From Octopus sinensis (lineage: Eukaryota), in contig NC_043002.1 in the NCBI RefSeq assembly GCF_006345805.1, positions 27,094,001 to 27,158,000 on the forward strand: a DNA stretch of 64,000 nt. Direction: 5' to 3'. Below are positions 9,101 through 63,569 of the stretch, in pieces. The stretch's first letter is position 1. Each line of letters begins with the position of its first letter. The notes under the pieces were generated by a model. That model worked only from the letters and a program-made list of their open reading frames with translations. It had not been told where the DNA came from and did no database searches. Position numbers and translations under genes: made by a program.

Positions 9101-9758
9101 CTCCATTAACAGTTTAAAATATATCAAGTTATTTTCATCTTATTGCTAATCAAATGTGATTTTTTTTTCTGATGCAGACTGAGTTACCTAAATCTAAAGA
9201 TAGTAGAAAGTCGTCTAGAGCAAATCTATTGATTCAATGTCTGTTGAAAATAAAATTTATCTTTGTGCTCTAAGTTTTTCCCTATGGAAAACAGAGATTA
9301 ATTTACGGATTAATAATTATGTTTCGAGGCAATAAATATGTACATCAGTGTTAAATTGCTAAAATCATATGTAGTTAACTTACAAAAGAAAAAAATAATA
9401 AATAGTTATTTACTCGAATATTATGTGAATATATATTATTAACTACATAGGAAATAATTGTTAAAGTTAATATATCTAGTTTTATTCAATTTGATATTAA
9501 CATCACGTTGAGTGGGTTTATTCTAGATTGAATAGCAGAATTGGTAAATATGTATTTGAAGAACGAACAATAGATCAAAAGAAGTTAATTAGAACTAAAC
9601 TAGACTTTATATATATATATATATATATATATATATCACAATCAAGGAATGGCCATAATAGGCCATTCACCCACTAGAAATAACAGCCAAAGCTTCAACC
9701 GCAAAATAACATTAATTCCGCAAACCAGGAGAAAATTAAAAAAACATTTACCCTGTAA

Positions 9759-9863
9759 TTTCTTATACGATGCACCGTTTCATCTATTGTTTAATGGTAA
9801 ACTAACCTGATTAAATTAAATCAAGCCAATCTTCCATAGGCCGATAGATTCGTCAGTAAGAAA
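9759..9863 (-). ncRNA. Type I hammerhead ribozyme, canonical core
   Basis: The minus strand reads TTTCTTA-CTGACGA-ATCTAT-(56 nt)-ATAGAT-GAA-ACGGTGCATCGT-A-TAAGAAA. Stem I is 7 perfect bp, stem II is 6 perfect bp, stem III is near-palindromic, and the cleavage triplet is GUA. Confidence 0.85.
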
Positions 9864-10144
9864 CAGCCAGATCCGAGCAGATATTATCACGAGGCACCTC
9901 TATCCCTGCCTCGGCAATATCTGACCTAAAATTTTCAAATCATCGCACTCGCGCCAAATTTATCGGCAGCAAATATAAGCCGCCGATTCCATTATATATA
10001 TATATATATATATATATATTATATATATATATATATAATATATATATATATATATAATATATATATATATATATATATACATACATATATTTACACACAT
10101 ACATATATATATATATGTGTGTGTGTGTGTGTGTGTGTGTGTGG

Positions 10145-10446
10145 AGGCGCAATGGCCTAGTGGATAGGGCAGTGGACTCGCTGTCGCAGGGTCGCGGTTT
10201 CGATTCCCAGACCGGGCGTTGTTAGTGTTTATTGAGCGAAAACACCTAAAAGCTCCACGAGGCTCCTGTAGGGGTGGTGATTCCTGCTGTACTCTTTCAC
10301 CACTCTTTCTCCCACTCTTTCTTCTGTTGGCCTGCTCGATTAGCCAGCGGGGTGGCGTCATTTGAAGGCTAAAACAATGCGAACGCATTGTGACCAGCGA
10401 TGTGTAACAACATCTGATGGTCTGGTCGGTCCCGTGATCCCGTGAT
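10145..10446 (+). mobile_element. tRNA-derived SINE
   Basis: A-box-like TGGCCTAGTGG, B-box-like GGTTTCGATTCC, about 300 bp body and a short tandem tail (CCCGTGAT)x2, lying between microsatellites. Confidence 0.8.
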
Positions 10447-10455
10447 ATATATATA

Positions 10456-60180: not shown

Positions 60181-62467
60181 AAAACAATATCGGAAACAAC
60201 ACAGAAACCGGTAAAAATATATACGTGTATATTTATATACATATATATATATATATATATATTATATATATATATATTATATATATATATATATATATAT
60301 ATATATGTGTGTGTGTGTGTGTGTGTGTGGTGTGTGTGTGTGTGTGTGTTTGTATGTACGCAAGTTTGTTTGTATACATAACAATTTCATATTTCTTAAT
60401 TGCCCTGTATATTTACAAAGGATCATTTCACATTGGGCCTTAAACATTCTAATACTATAATAACAATAATATAGTATTACAGCGATATAAACTAGTTTAT
60501 GAATATTGTAATTTTCCTTACAAAATTAGATTTTATTGAGAAGGAAGTGCTCTCAAAGCTGACGTTACATTGTCATTGCCTGAGTGAAGACAACATTTGA
60601 TATCGCGATATGTTCCGTTTTGATGTCATTGTTAAAATATTTGGCAGCTCACAAGTCAGAGTCAATGTTATTCACTGTAATCTAATGAGGTCAGCTATGA
60701 AAGTGAATATATATTCAAGCATTCACAGTGTAATGATTACATTGCACAATGGATGCTTAAATACCAACTTGGTTACATTTTAGAATTTATTGAGTACTCA
60801 AGTGACACAGAAAGATATCTCCAGATGTTCTCCTCCTCAAATATAGAATATGTTTGCCCTGTATTCATAGCTTAACGATATCATTTACTCTATTTTACAA
60901 TTTCAAATGCGTAAACCAGGATCGGTTTTATTTTTCATCCTTTCAGAGTGGCTAAAACCAATTTGTATGGATGATAAAGATCTAATACATCAACGTTTTC
61001 CTCTTCTGAAATCTCTTGTCTTATGTTTATATAAATAGTTGTATCCTCTAAATTTGATGGAAATACCAGCCAAATTTCTTTAAAGTCTTACCCTACATTT
61101 TTATTTAAATGAAGAGAACATTGGACAATTCAGTGCTTTCACTATTTTTTACGGGTCTCAGTAGTCCTGATCAGATATAGACACACTTTCGTCCCTTCAC
61201 TCTTTACCTATCGGAACATCGAGGATATGAGAAAACATTGCTCCAGTATTCGTCTGTTTCATAATTACAGCTCAAAATAGACGGGAACAAAAAAGAAATG
61301 TATTGATTTCATTATAGTCTCAAGTGACTACCTTAAAATTGATCAACGAACTTATTACCCGGAGTCGAAGATTAAGCCACACGCTTCCATGTCTCAGGAA
61401 GTATGAAACATTATTAAAAACGACTAATTGAAAGATATGCTAGAAATATGTGGATCTCCTAAATCTAATAAATTCGTTTCAATGCTATATTTCCCAGTAC
61501 CGTGTACCTGTCAAAGGCTTCTAGAGACATGACGTTCTAATAATTGTTGTAATGATATCAAATTGGAAAAGATGACTTTCTTATGAAGCACTAACAATTC
61601 AATTTCAAAACTAAAAAGCTGATTTATGTTTGTGATGAAGATTAGAAAGCTTACGAGCATGAGGTAAACAATAAGAAATTGATCTATAGTTTAATAGTAA
61701 GACATTGATAAGTATTTGTGTTTGTTACTCAAGGTATTTTTTCTTATTTTGCTTATTGTATATCAGACATAATGTTTCGAAACATGTCAGATACTTAGGT
61801 TATATATATATATATACATACATATATACACAAAATCACACGCACTTACAAGCTTGCATACATATCCAAGCGCATATATATATGCATATGCATGTGTGCG
61901 TGTATGTAAGTATTTATCTATACATGCTAGCTCATAGATGCAAAACAGCATCGAGAAAATAGCGCTTGAATACCAAAAGTACAGTAATTTATTATTGAAG
62001 CTAGAAAAGACTTCCTAAATTATTAAGCAGAGTTTCACATATTTGATCATCGGGCATCTGTGAATATTCTCAAGAAACCCTATATATGTATGTACGGATG
62101 TCATTTATCAGTTATATTTCAAGATTTCTTATTAATAGAGAAAGGGCCAGCTTCTAACGTAGATTCAGGGTATTTTGTATGTATGTATGTATGTATGTAT
62201 GTATGTATGTATGTATGTATTTAATTTTTATGCTCTACAATGACTTGATTCCGAAACGTACGTCCGTAGGTAACTTAATATAGAATGATTTCCGTCATTT
62301 CTTTCTCTTTTGCCTACGTCGTTTGTTTTTTAAGTGCTTTGGTTTTACTGGGATTCCCCTTTTAAGTAGAAAGAATAGCCAAAACTTTTTGACTGCTATT
62401 TCTAAATTCGGTGTGTGGTGAGGCATATCGTTGCTGAACCCTTAAGTAATTAGTACATATATATATA

Positions 62468-62643
62468 TATAATTAAAATAAACAACAAGAATAACGTCGG
62501 TAATTTGGGACGATCGTTTCACGCTACATTATTTTATTAAATATTGTAACTGTTGTAATATTTACAATATTTAATAAAATGATGTAGCGTGAAACGATCG
62601 TACCAAATTACCGAAATTATTCTTGTTGCTTATTTTGATTATA
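62468..62643. repeat. Hairpin, about 82-bp arms with a 12-nt loop
   Basis: 62468-62549 is the reverse complement of 62562-62643 with several mismatches. The arms carry GAAACGATCGT(A/C). Confidence 0.9.
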
Positions 62644-63146
62644 ATCACCACATGGATTTATATGGATAACACCGGTATTTCGACTGTGTGTGTCACAAAT
62701 CCGTATGTATGTATTATATATGTACTTATGTATGTATGTATGTATGTATGCATGTATGTATACATGTATGTATAGTCAAACTAAGTTCTACAGGGAAGCT
62801 ATTTGTGGTAACAAGCAATTCAATGAGATATAGTGCGCAATCTCTGCAACCACAGTAAGGCATTACTGAGGTGGTTGATTTACACTATGTAAAAACCTAT
62901 GGTGGGTGGGGGGGGGTAAAATCTCACTACTTACCTCCCAAAATAAGGAAATAAGGGCCTAGATACATATAATACAGTTCAAGGAAAAAATTCTATTCCT
63001 CAAGCTACCAGGACTTGAAGAATAGAGGTGAGAATTATATAAGAGAAATATATAATAATACATTTATAATAATAAAGGGTAAAAATTATTAATGATTTTC
63101 ACCAGGTGGTCAGCGTCGAAATAAAAACCTCATAAGTAAAATTTAC

Positions 63147-63569
63147 AAATATTTTATAATTATATACATAATTATAACAAGGGCTTGACTTGCGCCTCAC
63201 CACGCACTGAAAAAATAGACGTCAAATGACACTATTACTACCATAAATTCCCCGAGAATAACACACCACATAATAGGCTAGCAAAAGAAAAGAAAATGAA
63301 TTAAAATTTTCGGTTAACCGCGTACAAGATCCTGTTTCCAGCTTAAAGTAAAAAAAATATTACCTATTGCTTTCAACTGGAAACAAGGTCTTGTACGCTG
63401 TTAACCGAAATTTTTAATTAATTTTTTTTCTTTTGCTAGCCCATTATGTGGTGTGCAATTTTCGGAGAATTTATGATGGTAATAGTGTCTTTTGACGTCT
63501 ATTTTTCAGTGCGTGGTGGGGAGCAGGCCAATCACTTGTTATAATTATGTATATAATTATAAAATATTT
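63147..63569. repeat. Hairpin, about 195-bp arms with a 35-nt spacer
   Basis: 63147-63341 is the reverse complement of 63377-63569, with more substitutions and indels than the other hairpins. Confidence 0.9.

Follow-up and report, generated by a model that had tools for sequence, protein, structure and literature searches.

The 64-kb stretch of Octopus sinensis DNA analyzed here (64,000 nucleotides of contig NC_043002.1, hereafter the window) carries short, non-coding units with type I hammerhead ribozyme (HHR) motifs, which end at (TA)n microsatellites and occur either as solo copies or as two inverted copies joined into a fold-back. At a probability of roughly 60%, we interpret these units as short non-coding retroelements bearing hammerheads that were inserted into (TA)n by the machinery of Penelope-like elements (PLEs), as inverted twins or solo. 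At least five and probably six independent insertions are present in the window, each with a type I hammerhead or the relic of one. A first-pass annotation of the same DNA had proposed a system of PLE-derived non-coding cassettes. The non-coding character of the units and an anatomy that fits PLE insertion are borne out by our analysis; the notion of a new cassette system is not, since inverted 5'-truncated twins, one-sided tails, (TA)n targets, and HHRs near 3' ends or as opposite-strand pairs have all been published for PLEs. The layout is the known PLE insertion signature, found on short non-coding hammerhead-bearing units of an octopus, and not a new kind of system.

To define the hammerheads, a strict type I descriptor was applied, consisting of CUGANGA, helix II, GAAA, helix III with A15.1-U16.1, H17, and helix I. 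It matched the window exactly twice, at 9758-9864 and 51077-51153, both on the minus strand (Table 1). In the first motif, the 6-bp helix II is extended by a stable hairpin of ~60 nt and helix III spans 6 bp. Its H17 is A9766, with cleavage predicted 3' of this residue, between 9766 and 9765 of the minus strand, and its minimum-free-energy fold contains helix I together with the long, stable helix II (z = -4.45). The second motif has a helix II of 3 bp plus an internal hairpin, a 3-bp helix III, and A51084 as H17, 3' of which this putative ribozyme would cleave; its fold recovers helix II, and helix I only in part. The core C3-U4-G5-A6-N7-G8-A9, G12-A13-A14, A15.1-U16.1, H17 is complete at 9758-9864, 51077-51153, and 42857-42913, and the three helices are clean at 9758 and 51077 and partial at 26944, 42857, 44830, and 24932.

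Three different nulls were used to gauge how often such motifs arise by chance. Dinucleotide shuffles in 2-kb blocks yielded 0.03 strict matches per shuffled window against the two observed (P(>=2) = 0.007). When nearest-neighbor energies for helices I and II were required in 300 shuffles, none of the 300 attained the level of 9758, and the level of 51077 was reached 0.007 times per window. Because shuffling destroys the natural hairpins of this genome, 719 scrambled versions of both core boxes were additionally run as decoys on the real sequence; they averaged 0.042 matches, and 0.3% of them reached two. The hammerhead motifs exceed chance under each of these nulls.

Beyond the two canonical motifs, three of the loci in the first-pass list, which claimed eight motifs at nine sites, are retained as variants or relics. 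The inverted pair at 26669/26944 has U3-A8 in place of C3-G8, a core covariant reported in PLEs of Schistosoma (PMC4209133). Its helix II is GGUC/GACC, and 7 of the 8 positions in helix I are paired; the plus-strand member at 26944-26981 lies ~60 nt from the 3' end of its arm and is mirrored by the minus-strand copy at 26669-26706, and a match of this type is expected ~0.067 times per shuffled window. The helix II of the motif at 42857-42913 (0.01 expected per shuffled window) is weak, with an A.A mismatch at its base (10.1/11.1), and the motif is probably degenerate. At 44830-44925, helix I is 4 bp long, and 0.03 matches per window are expected in the one-mismatch space. This decayed motif reaches into an inverted repeat (43520-43620/44908-45008), where it overlaps the right arm at its inner end; a diverged inverted paralogue in the left arm (~43600-43625) reads GAAACACGUCUC and keeps GAAA, which suggests that the ancestral motif was most likely the canonical GAAACACGUGUC. 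The 44830 element is also present in Octopus vulgaris, with two further substitutions. A further motif, at 24932-24968, had been missed in the first pass; its helix I has only 2 bp, and a mirror copy lies in the left arm of the palindrome 24755-25069. Summed across all variant spaces, the expectation is ~0.11 per window, compared with five independent loci observed.

The remaining three sites of the first-pass list were rejected as hammerheads: 28365 has neither a proper GAAA box nor a helix I, 55646 has no helix I and a helix II without closure, and 62664 lacks CUGANGA and lies on the wrong strand relative to its fold-back. None of the three matched in any descriptor run, whether strict, variant, or one-mismatch. 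In the arms of the neighboring palindrome 62468-62643, GAAACGAUCGU followed by A/C at 62591 (+) and 62520 (-) corresponds to the 3' half of a hammerhead with an 8-nt palindromic helix III; no CUGANGA occurs in the 45 nt retained upstream of these half-motifs. Window-wide, 20 such 3' half-motifs were observed against 7.7 expected from shuffles.

The first-pass annotation had also suggested a scan with the hammerhead models of Rfam. The Rfam covariance models found no hammerhead in the whole window, either at the gathering score or among the best 150 of 191 matches at E <= 10, and none at E <= 10 in slices of 300-350 nt around the two best motifs. Long helix II insertions combined with minimal helices are probably responsible for these misses. 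Among the matches listed, those below threshold were confined to microRNA models (MIR2863, mir-297, mir-3149, and others) on palindromes and microsatellites, for example at 24858-24966; they occur on both strands and are artifacts of sequence type. A metagenome scan with the pattern of the 9758 hammerhead returned seven matches, none of them a hammerhead. Six belong to one conserved protein-coding gene that looks like a bacterial Clp-type ATPase, and the seventh is an unrelated sequence.

The elements that carry these motifs are non-coding, and their anatomy is consistent. All five fold-backs with a unique center follow one plan, in which the 5' ends of two inverted copies are joined and the 3' ends face outward, abutting (TA)n or another microsatellite. 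In each of the five, a one-sided, unrepeated tail sits between one arm and the microsatellite. At every supported locus, the motif points towards the end adjoining (TA)n, from which it lies 60-280 nt upstream; in 42696-43183 and 50911-51688, it is found 29-33 nt upstream of the repeated arm. The element ends at (TA)n at all five supported loci, four of which lie in or adjoin long inverted repeats, structures that make up ~5% of the window. The association of hammerheads with fold-backs and (TA)n proposed in the first pass is thereby supported for these four loci, with the restriction, shown by the fold-back at 33165-33579 discussed below, that not every (TA)n fold-back belongs to the group. 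The solo element 9637-9993 is highly structured over its whole length (z = -4.3). No tandem copies of any HHR unit were found within the window. As a separate observation, the 110-nt tail of 42696-43183 contains a 23-bp hairpin of its own at 43097-43170.

Table 1. Hammerhead motifs, the elements that carry them, and other features of the window (positions are those of the whole stretch).
Feature	Position	Strand	Tail (nt)	Description
Canonical type I hammerhead motif	9758-9864	-		helix I 8 bp, CUGACGA, GAAA, helix III ACGGUGCAUCGU
Canonical type I hammerhead motif	51077-51153	-		helix I 7 bp, CUGAAGA, GAAA, ACCGAGGU
U3-A8 core-variant hammerhead pair	26669-26706 / 26944-26981	- / +		UUGAAAA-GGUC...GACC-GAAA-CCGG-UA
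Hammerhead-like motif	42857-42913	+		both cores, 6-bp helix I, AUCGAU helix III
Decayed hammerhead	44830-44925	+		CUGAUGA, 11-bp helix II with ~60-nt insert, GAAG (G15.1), CACGUG, UC
Hammerhead-like motif	24932-24968	+		UUGAAAA, 4-bp helix II, GAAA, AGCGCU, A
Solo non-coding element, 357 nt	9637-9993	-		(TA)n at both sides; carries best hammerhead
Palindrome	24755-25102		33	154-nt arms, 7-nt center, one-sided tail 25070-25102, (TA)n flanks
Near-perfect palindrome	26608-27042			214-nt arms, 7-nt center, outer ends at (TA)n
Same, with tail 26578-26607	26578-27042		30	
Fold-back	42696-43183		110	
Short inverted copy of this fold-back	42696-42829	-		arm A only; 3' end at (TA)n tail of CR1-like LINE
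Long copy of this fold-back	42830-43183	+		center with HHR-like motif, arm A (42940-43073), one-sided tail 43074-43183, then (TA)n
Fold-back	50911-51688		112	
Long copy of this fold-back	50911-51436	-		B (51436-51345), C with HHR, A (51054-50911)
Short inverted twin	51433-51688	+		A (51433-51576), ~12-nt spacer (51577-51588), B (~51589-51683), then (TA)n
Palindrome	62468-62684		41	87-nt arms, one-sided tail 62644-62684
Frameshifted Penelope-like RT remnant	11804-12573	+		ADKGG, YGLPIIHK, SDIYPNID, AMGNP, FIDNVF
CR1-like LINE RT remnants	41427-42574; 49629-50684			FADD, ...PHLEYC... C-terminal region, 8-bp (CAAAGTAT)n tail
LINE RT remnant	54255-55064			
Intronless rhodopsin-type GPCR gene	39424-40614	-		Srw/7tm_1; 'sex peptide receptor-like' or 'dmsr-1-like'
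(RT, reverse transcriptase; LINE, long interspersed nuclear element; GPCR, G-protein-coupled receptor.)

The published properties of PLEs match this plan point by point. PLEs prefer (TA)n as a target, commonly leave an inverted 5'-truncated copy, have a 30-40-bp tail at one end, and carry HHRs near their 3' ends (PMC8557442). During their insertion, both DNA strands are cleaved and extended, and the tail is defined by two start sites of reverse transcription (PMC11167929). Among their diverse minimal hammerheads, mostly solo or paired, a 2-bp helix I and dual HHRs on opposite strands 100-700 bp apart have been reported (PMC4209133). According to the mechanism published for PLEs, the protein cuts both strands of the target, and reverse transcription is then primed on both, with a choice of two internal positions on the RNA at which it can start. 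The outcome is two inverted copies with joined 5' ends, 3' ends facing the (TA)n target, and an extra tail on one copy. The fold-backs 24755-25102, 26578-27042, 42696-43183, 50911-51688, and 62468-62684 show this anatomy and were most likely made in this manner, with 9637-9993 as a solo copy. In 50911-51688, both 3' ends lie at AU-rich sites adjoining (TA)n, that of the long minus-strand copy (50911-51436) at (TA)n itself. In its short twin (51433-51688), the 3' segment A runs into the 5' segment B, and from this junction we infer a template that was tandem or circular, as for the pseudo-long terminal repeats (pseudo-LTRs) of PLEs or the circular RNAs of retrozymes.

Long terminal inverted repeats, a short unique center, and TA-rich flanks would also suit DNA transposons. 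Miniature inverted-repeat transposable elements (MITEs) or Foldback elements inserting at TA dinucleotides, with the hammerhead-like motifs as passengers or chance matches, would produce such features, and the repeats annotated in O. vulgaris include Tc1-Mariner elements and MITEs (PMC13282606). We regard this explanation as improbable. At 50911-51688, the segments follow one another as A' B' A B, an interleaved and not a nested arrangement that contains a 3'-to-5' junction; the tails are one-sided; and one family has a solo, non-palindromic copy with arm and tail that ends at (TA)n. Moreover, the arm interiors are as well conserved as the termini, the motifs invariably point to the outer ends, and a target-site duplication is not readable inside (TA)n.

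The comparison with O. vulgaris covers positions 29424-50578 of the window (O. vulgaris locus L001), at ~97% identity; this segment matches chromosome record CM016864.1 of O. sinensis assembly GCA_006345805.1 without a difference. The 42696-43183 fold-back is present almost base for base in this independent assembly and is therefore not an assembly artifact. The fold-back at 33165-33579 presents a different picture: O. vulgaris lacks its right arm (about 33414-33579), and the left arm corresponds there to unremarkable single-copy flanking sequence that leads into (TA)n(TG)n. It looks like a local inverted duplication into (TA)n, a deletion in O. vulgaris, or an assembly artifact. The palindrome 20833-21073 resembles 33165-33579: both are centered on (TA)n, with unique arms outside, and neither has a hammerhead motif. 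They are set apart from the motif-bearing fold-backs. These two loci lend some weight to the view that the palindromes in general are local inverted duplications or assembly artifacts arising from hairpin-prone (TA)n, with no mobile element involved and with incidental hammerheads. As an account of the motif-bearing structures, this is very unlikely, given the O. vulgaris counterpart of 42696-43183, the dispersed repeat that forms the arm of 24755-25069, and the enrichment of HHR motifs and their concentration in the fold-backs with a unique center.

The arms of the palindrome 24755-25102 are members of a dispersed repeat family, a solo copy of which was found at 18118-18272 of L010, a locus on another O. 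sinensis chromosome. In the L010 copy, arm and tail form one uninterrupted sequence that ends at (TA)6; the left arm of the window palindrome, by contrast, breaks off short of the tail. The 33-nt tail is therefore part of the family template and was derived from it. Aligned in register, the L010 copy reads CUGAUGA where the window has UUGAAAA (C3-G8 versus U3-A8) and has U-A at 10.2/11.2 where the window has C-G. The 24932 motif family has two compensatory changes, which in three sequences are no more than suggestive, and 53 of 500 shuffles do as well. A concatenated translation of the open reading frames (ORFs) overlapping the elements was also searched for further genomic copies and gave no matches.

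Which RT might have mobilized the elements was considered next to the coding remnants of the window. The first-pass annotation had claimed two PLE coding remnants. We found a single PLE-like RT remnant in the window, at 11804-12573 on the plus strand and separate from the HHR elements; the RTs that neighbor the motif-bearing fold-backs belong to CR1-like LINEs. Motifs of the DKG and LPKIHK types, as present in the 11804-12573 remnant, mark PLEs. A DKG motif is mentioned for PLEs in the literature (PMC8557442). The closest protein is an uncharacterized O. sinensis protein with 59% identity, the Pfam families PF28514 and PF26215 are listed for relatives of the remnant, and a paralogous DNA copy occurs in L010. 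No GIY-YIG domain was found in a Pfam scan of the RT-bearing regions, this remnant included. The HHR elements showed no similarity to the copy of the remnant in L010. In O. vulgaris, 31 recently active PLE families have been described (PMC13282606).

The CR1-like copies at 41640-42699 and 49749-50809 are 97% identical and end in (TA)n exactly where the fold-backs 42696-43183 and 50911-51688 begin. This coincidence, the presence of several LINE families in the window, and the non-coding nature of the HHR elements would suit short interspersed nuclear element (SINE)-like passengers, moved by the machinery of CR1-like or other LINEs in the way proposed for the Schistosoma Sm-alpha elements; (TA)n would then reflect a LINE endonuclease preference or microsatellite tails. 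We give this possibility a low probability. The 9637-9993 element has no similarity to the 3' end of the CR1-like LINE, and none of the HHR elements shares a 3' end with the LINEs of the window. Twin priming by LINEs yields an inversion of the upstream segment, unlike the inverted duplicate of one 3' segment with an optional tail that is seen here. The two CR1-like fragments themselves share an identical 5' start position with TA-rich DNA upstream, and one keeps a (CAAAGTAT)3 tail. Elsewhere, one LINE family has two inverted copies of its 5' part, at 54069-54230 and 57956-58116 (3.7 kb apart, 88% identity), and a separate LINE ORF with endonuclease and RT domains occupies 568-3054 on the minus strand.

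Several observations weigh against insertion of the hammerhead units by PLE machinery. No element has a PLE ORF or detectable homology to the window remnant at 11804-12573, and the CR1-like LINEs, too, have (TA)n at their ends, which leaves room for mobilization by another RT. The Rfam hammerhead models score no site. A second genomic copy was obtained for one family only, and the covariation is thin (three sequences, equaled by 53 of 500 shuffles). Two of the tails, at 110-112 nt, exceed the published 30-40 bp. Finally, adjacency to (TA)n carries little weight by itself, given the abundance of these tracts: the AT-rich window (GC content 28-43%) has 30 (TA)n loci across its 64 kb, and 20% of it lies within 200 nt of one.

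The only host gene recognized in the window is the GPCR gene at 39424-40614, whose product shares 83% identity with a protein of Argonauta hians and is conserved across molluscs. Some further features were observed around (TA)n and other repeats. At positions 2628-3446 of L001, orthologous to 47392-47447 of the window, O. vulgaris has an 819-bp insertion within (TA)n that O. sinensis does not have; a scan of this insertion found no hammerhead and no terminal inverted repeats. Insertions or deletions seem to occur at (TA)n tracts in general. A tandem duplication with a unit of ~630 bp (47167-47797 and 47796-48402) is ~96% identical overall, with stretches of 100% identity; each unit has its own (TA)n, and the O. 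vulgaris alignment differs there. The segment 10143-10260 adjoins (TG)n and resembles a tRNA-derived SINE head; a tRNA scan of the window with ARAGORN, this segment included, found none. Two diverged apparent SINE copies of ~190 nt, 72% identical, lie at 8934-9122 and 51875-52064, near two HHR elements. This sequence was considered as a possible part of the HHR elements and rejected, as its distances to the two elements differ and it looks like a common octopus SINE. An older palindrome of ~430 bp at 63143-63573, with 87% identity between its halves and AT-rich flanks, is without a hammerhead motif.

If they hold genome-wide, these findings would extend PLE-associated hammerheads to cephalopods; a literature search found no paper describing hammerheads in octopus. 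The short insertions would also serve as natural examples showing the both-strand priming and the two RT start sites of the in-vitro PLE mechanism. In addition, the A-to-B junction would tie PLE-type insertion to a tandem or circular template, with a bearing on the proposed PLE origin of animal retrozymes. No major concept would be changed, even if all of this were true genome-wide. A bolder and rather doubtful proposition is that octopus genomes carry diverse non-coding, retrozyme-like hammerhead elements that arise from circular or tandem RNA templates and that PLE machinery integrates into (TA)n in the form of inverted twins instead of tandem arrays. Were this the case, the genomic layout would be one not yet described for animal retrozymes, and the hammerheads of these elements would tolerate a 40-60-nt insertion in helix II and unpaired 10.1/11.1 positions.

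Among known systems, the closest to the window motifs are the minimal type I HHRs of metazoan PLEs (Cervera and de la Pena 2014, PMC4209133). The two share type I topology, a short helix I, the U3-A8 variant, and a palindromic helix III suggesting activity as dimers. They also agree in very high sequence diversity within one genome, in mostly solo or truncated copies, and in opposite-strand pairs 100-700 bp apart. Unlike those HHRs, three window motifs have a helix II insertion of 40-60 nt, 42857 and the 24932 family are unpaired at 10.1/11.1 where G10.1-C11.1 is conserved, and the window motifs have no attached PLE ORF. As in PLE insertions (PMC8557442; PMC11167929), 5' ends are joined, 3' ends point outward, the extension is one-sided, and (TA)n is the target; one window family occurs both with and without the tail. 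The window units differ from these insertions in being non-coding and only 90-520 nt long, in having two tails of ~110 nt instead of 30-40, and in that near-perfect palindromes, whose arms are equal and whose centers measure 2-7 nt, make up several of the structures. Metazoan retrozymes without LTRs (PMC7229834; bioRxiv 10.64898/2026.07.22.740005), for the vertebrate members of which a PLE origin has been proposed, provide the other comparison. They too lack coding capacity, are rich in AT and strongly self-complementary, and measure 150-450 nt per unit, with a single type I HHR in each; 9637-9993 (357 nt) resembles them in size and fold, and the A-to-B junction implies that the template exceeded a single unit. 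Retrozymes are arranged as head-to-tail tandem repeats of 150-450 bp, whereas the copies in the window are solo or inverted twins.

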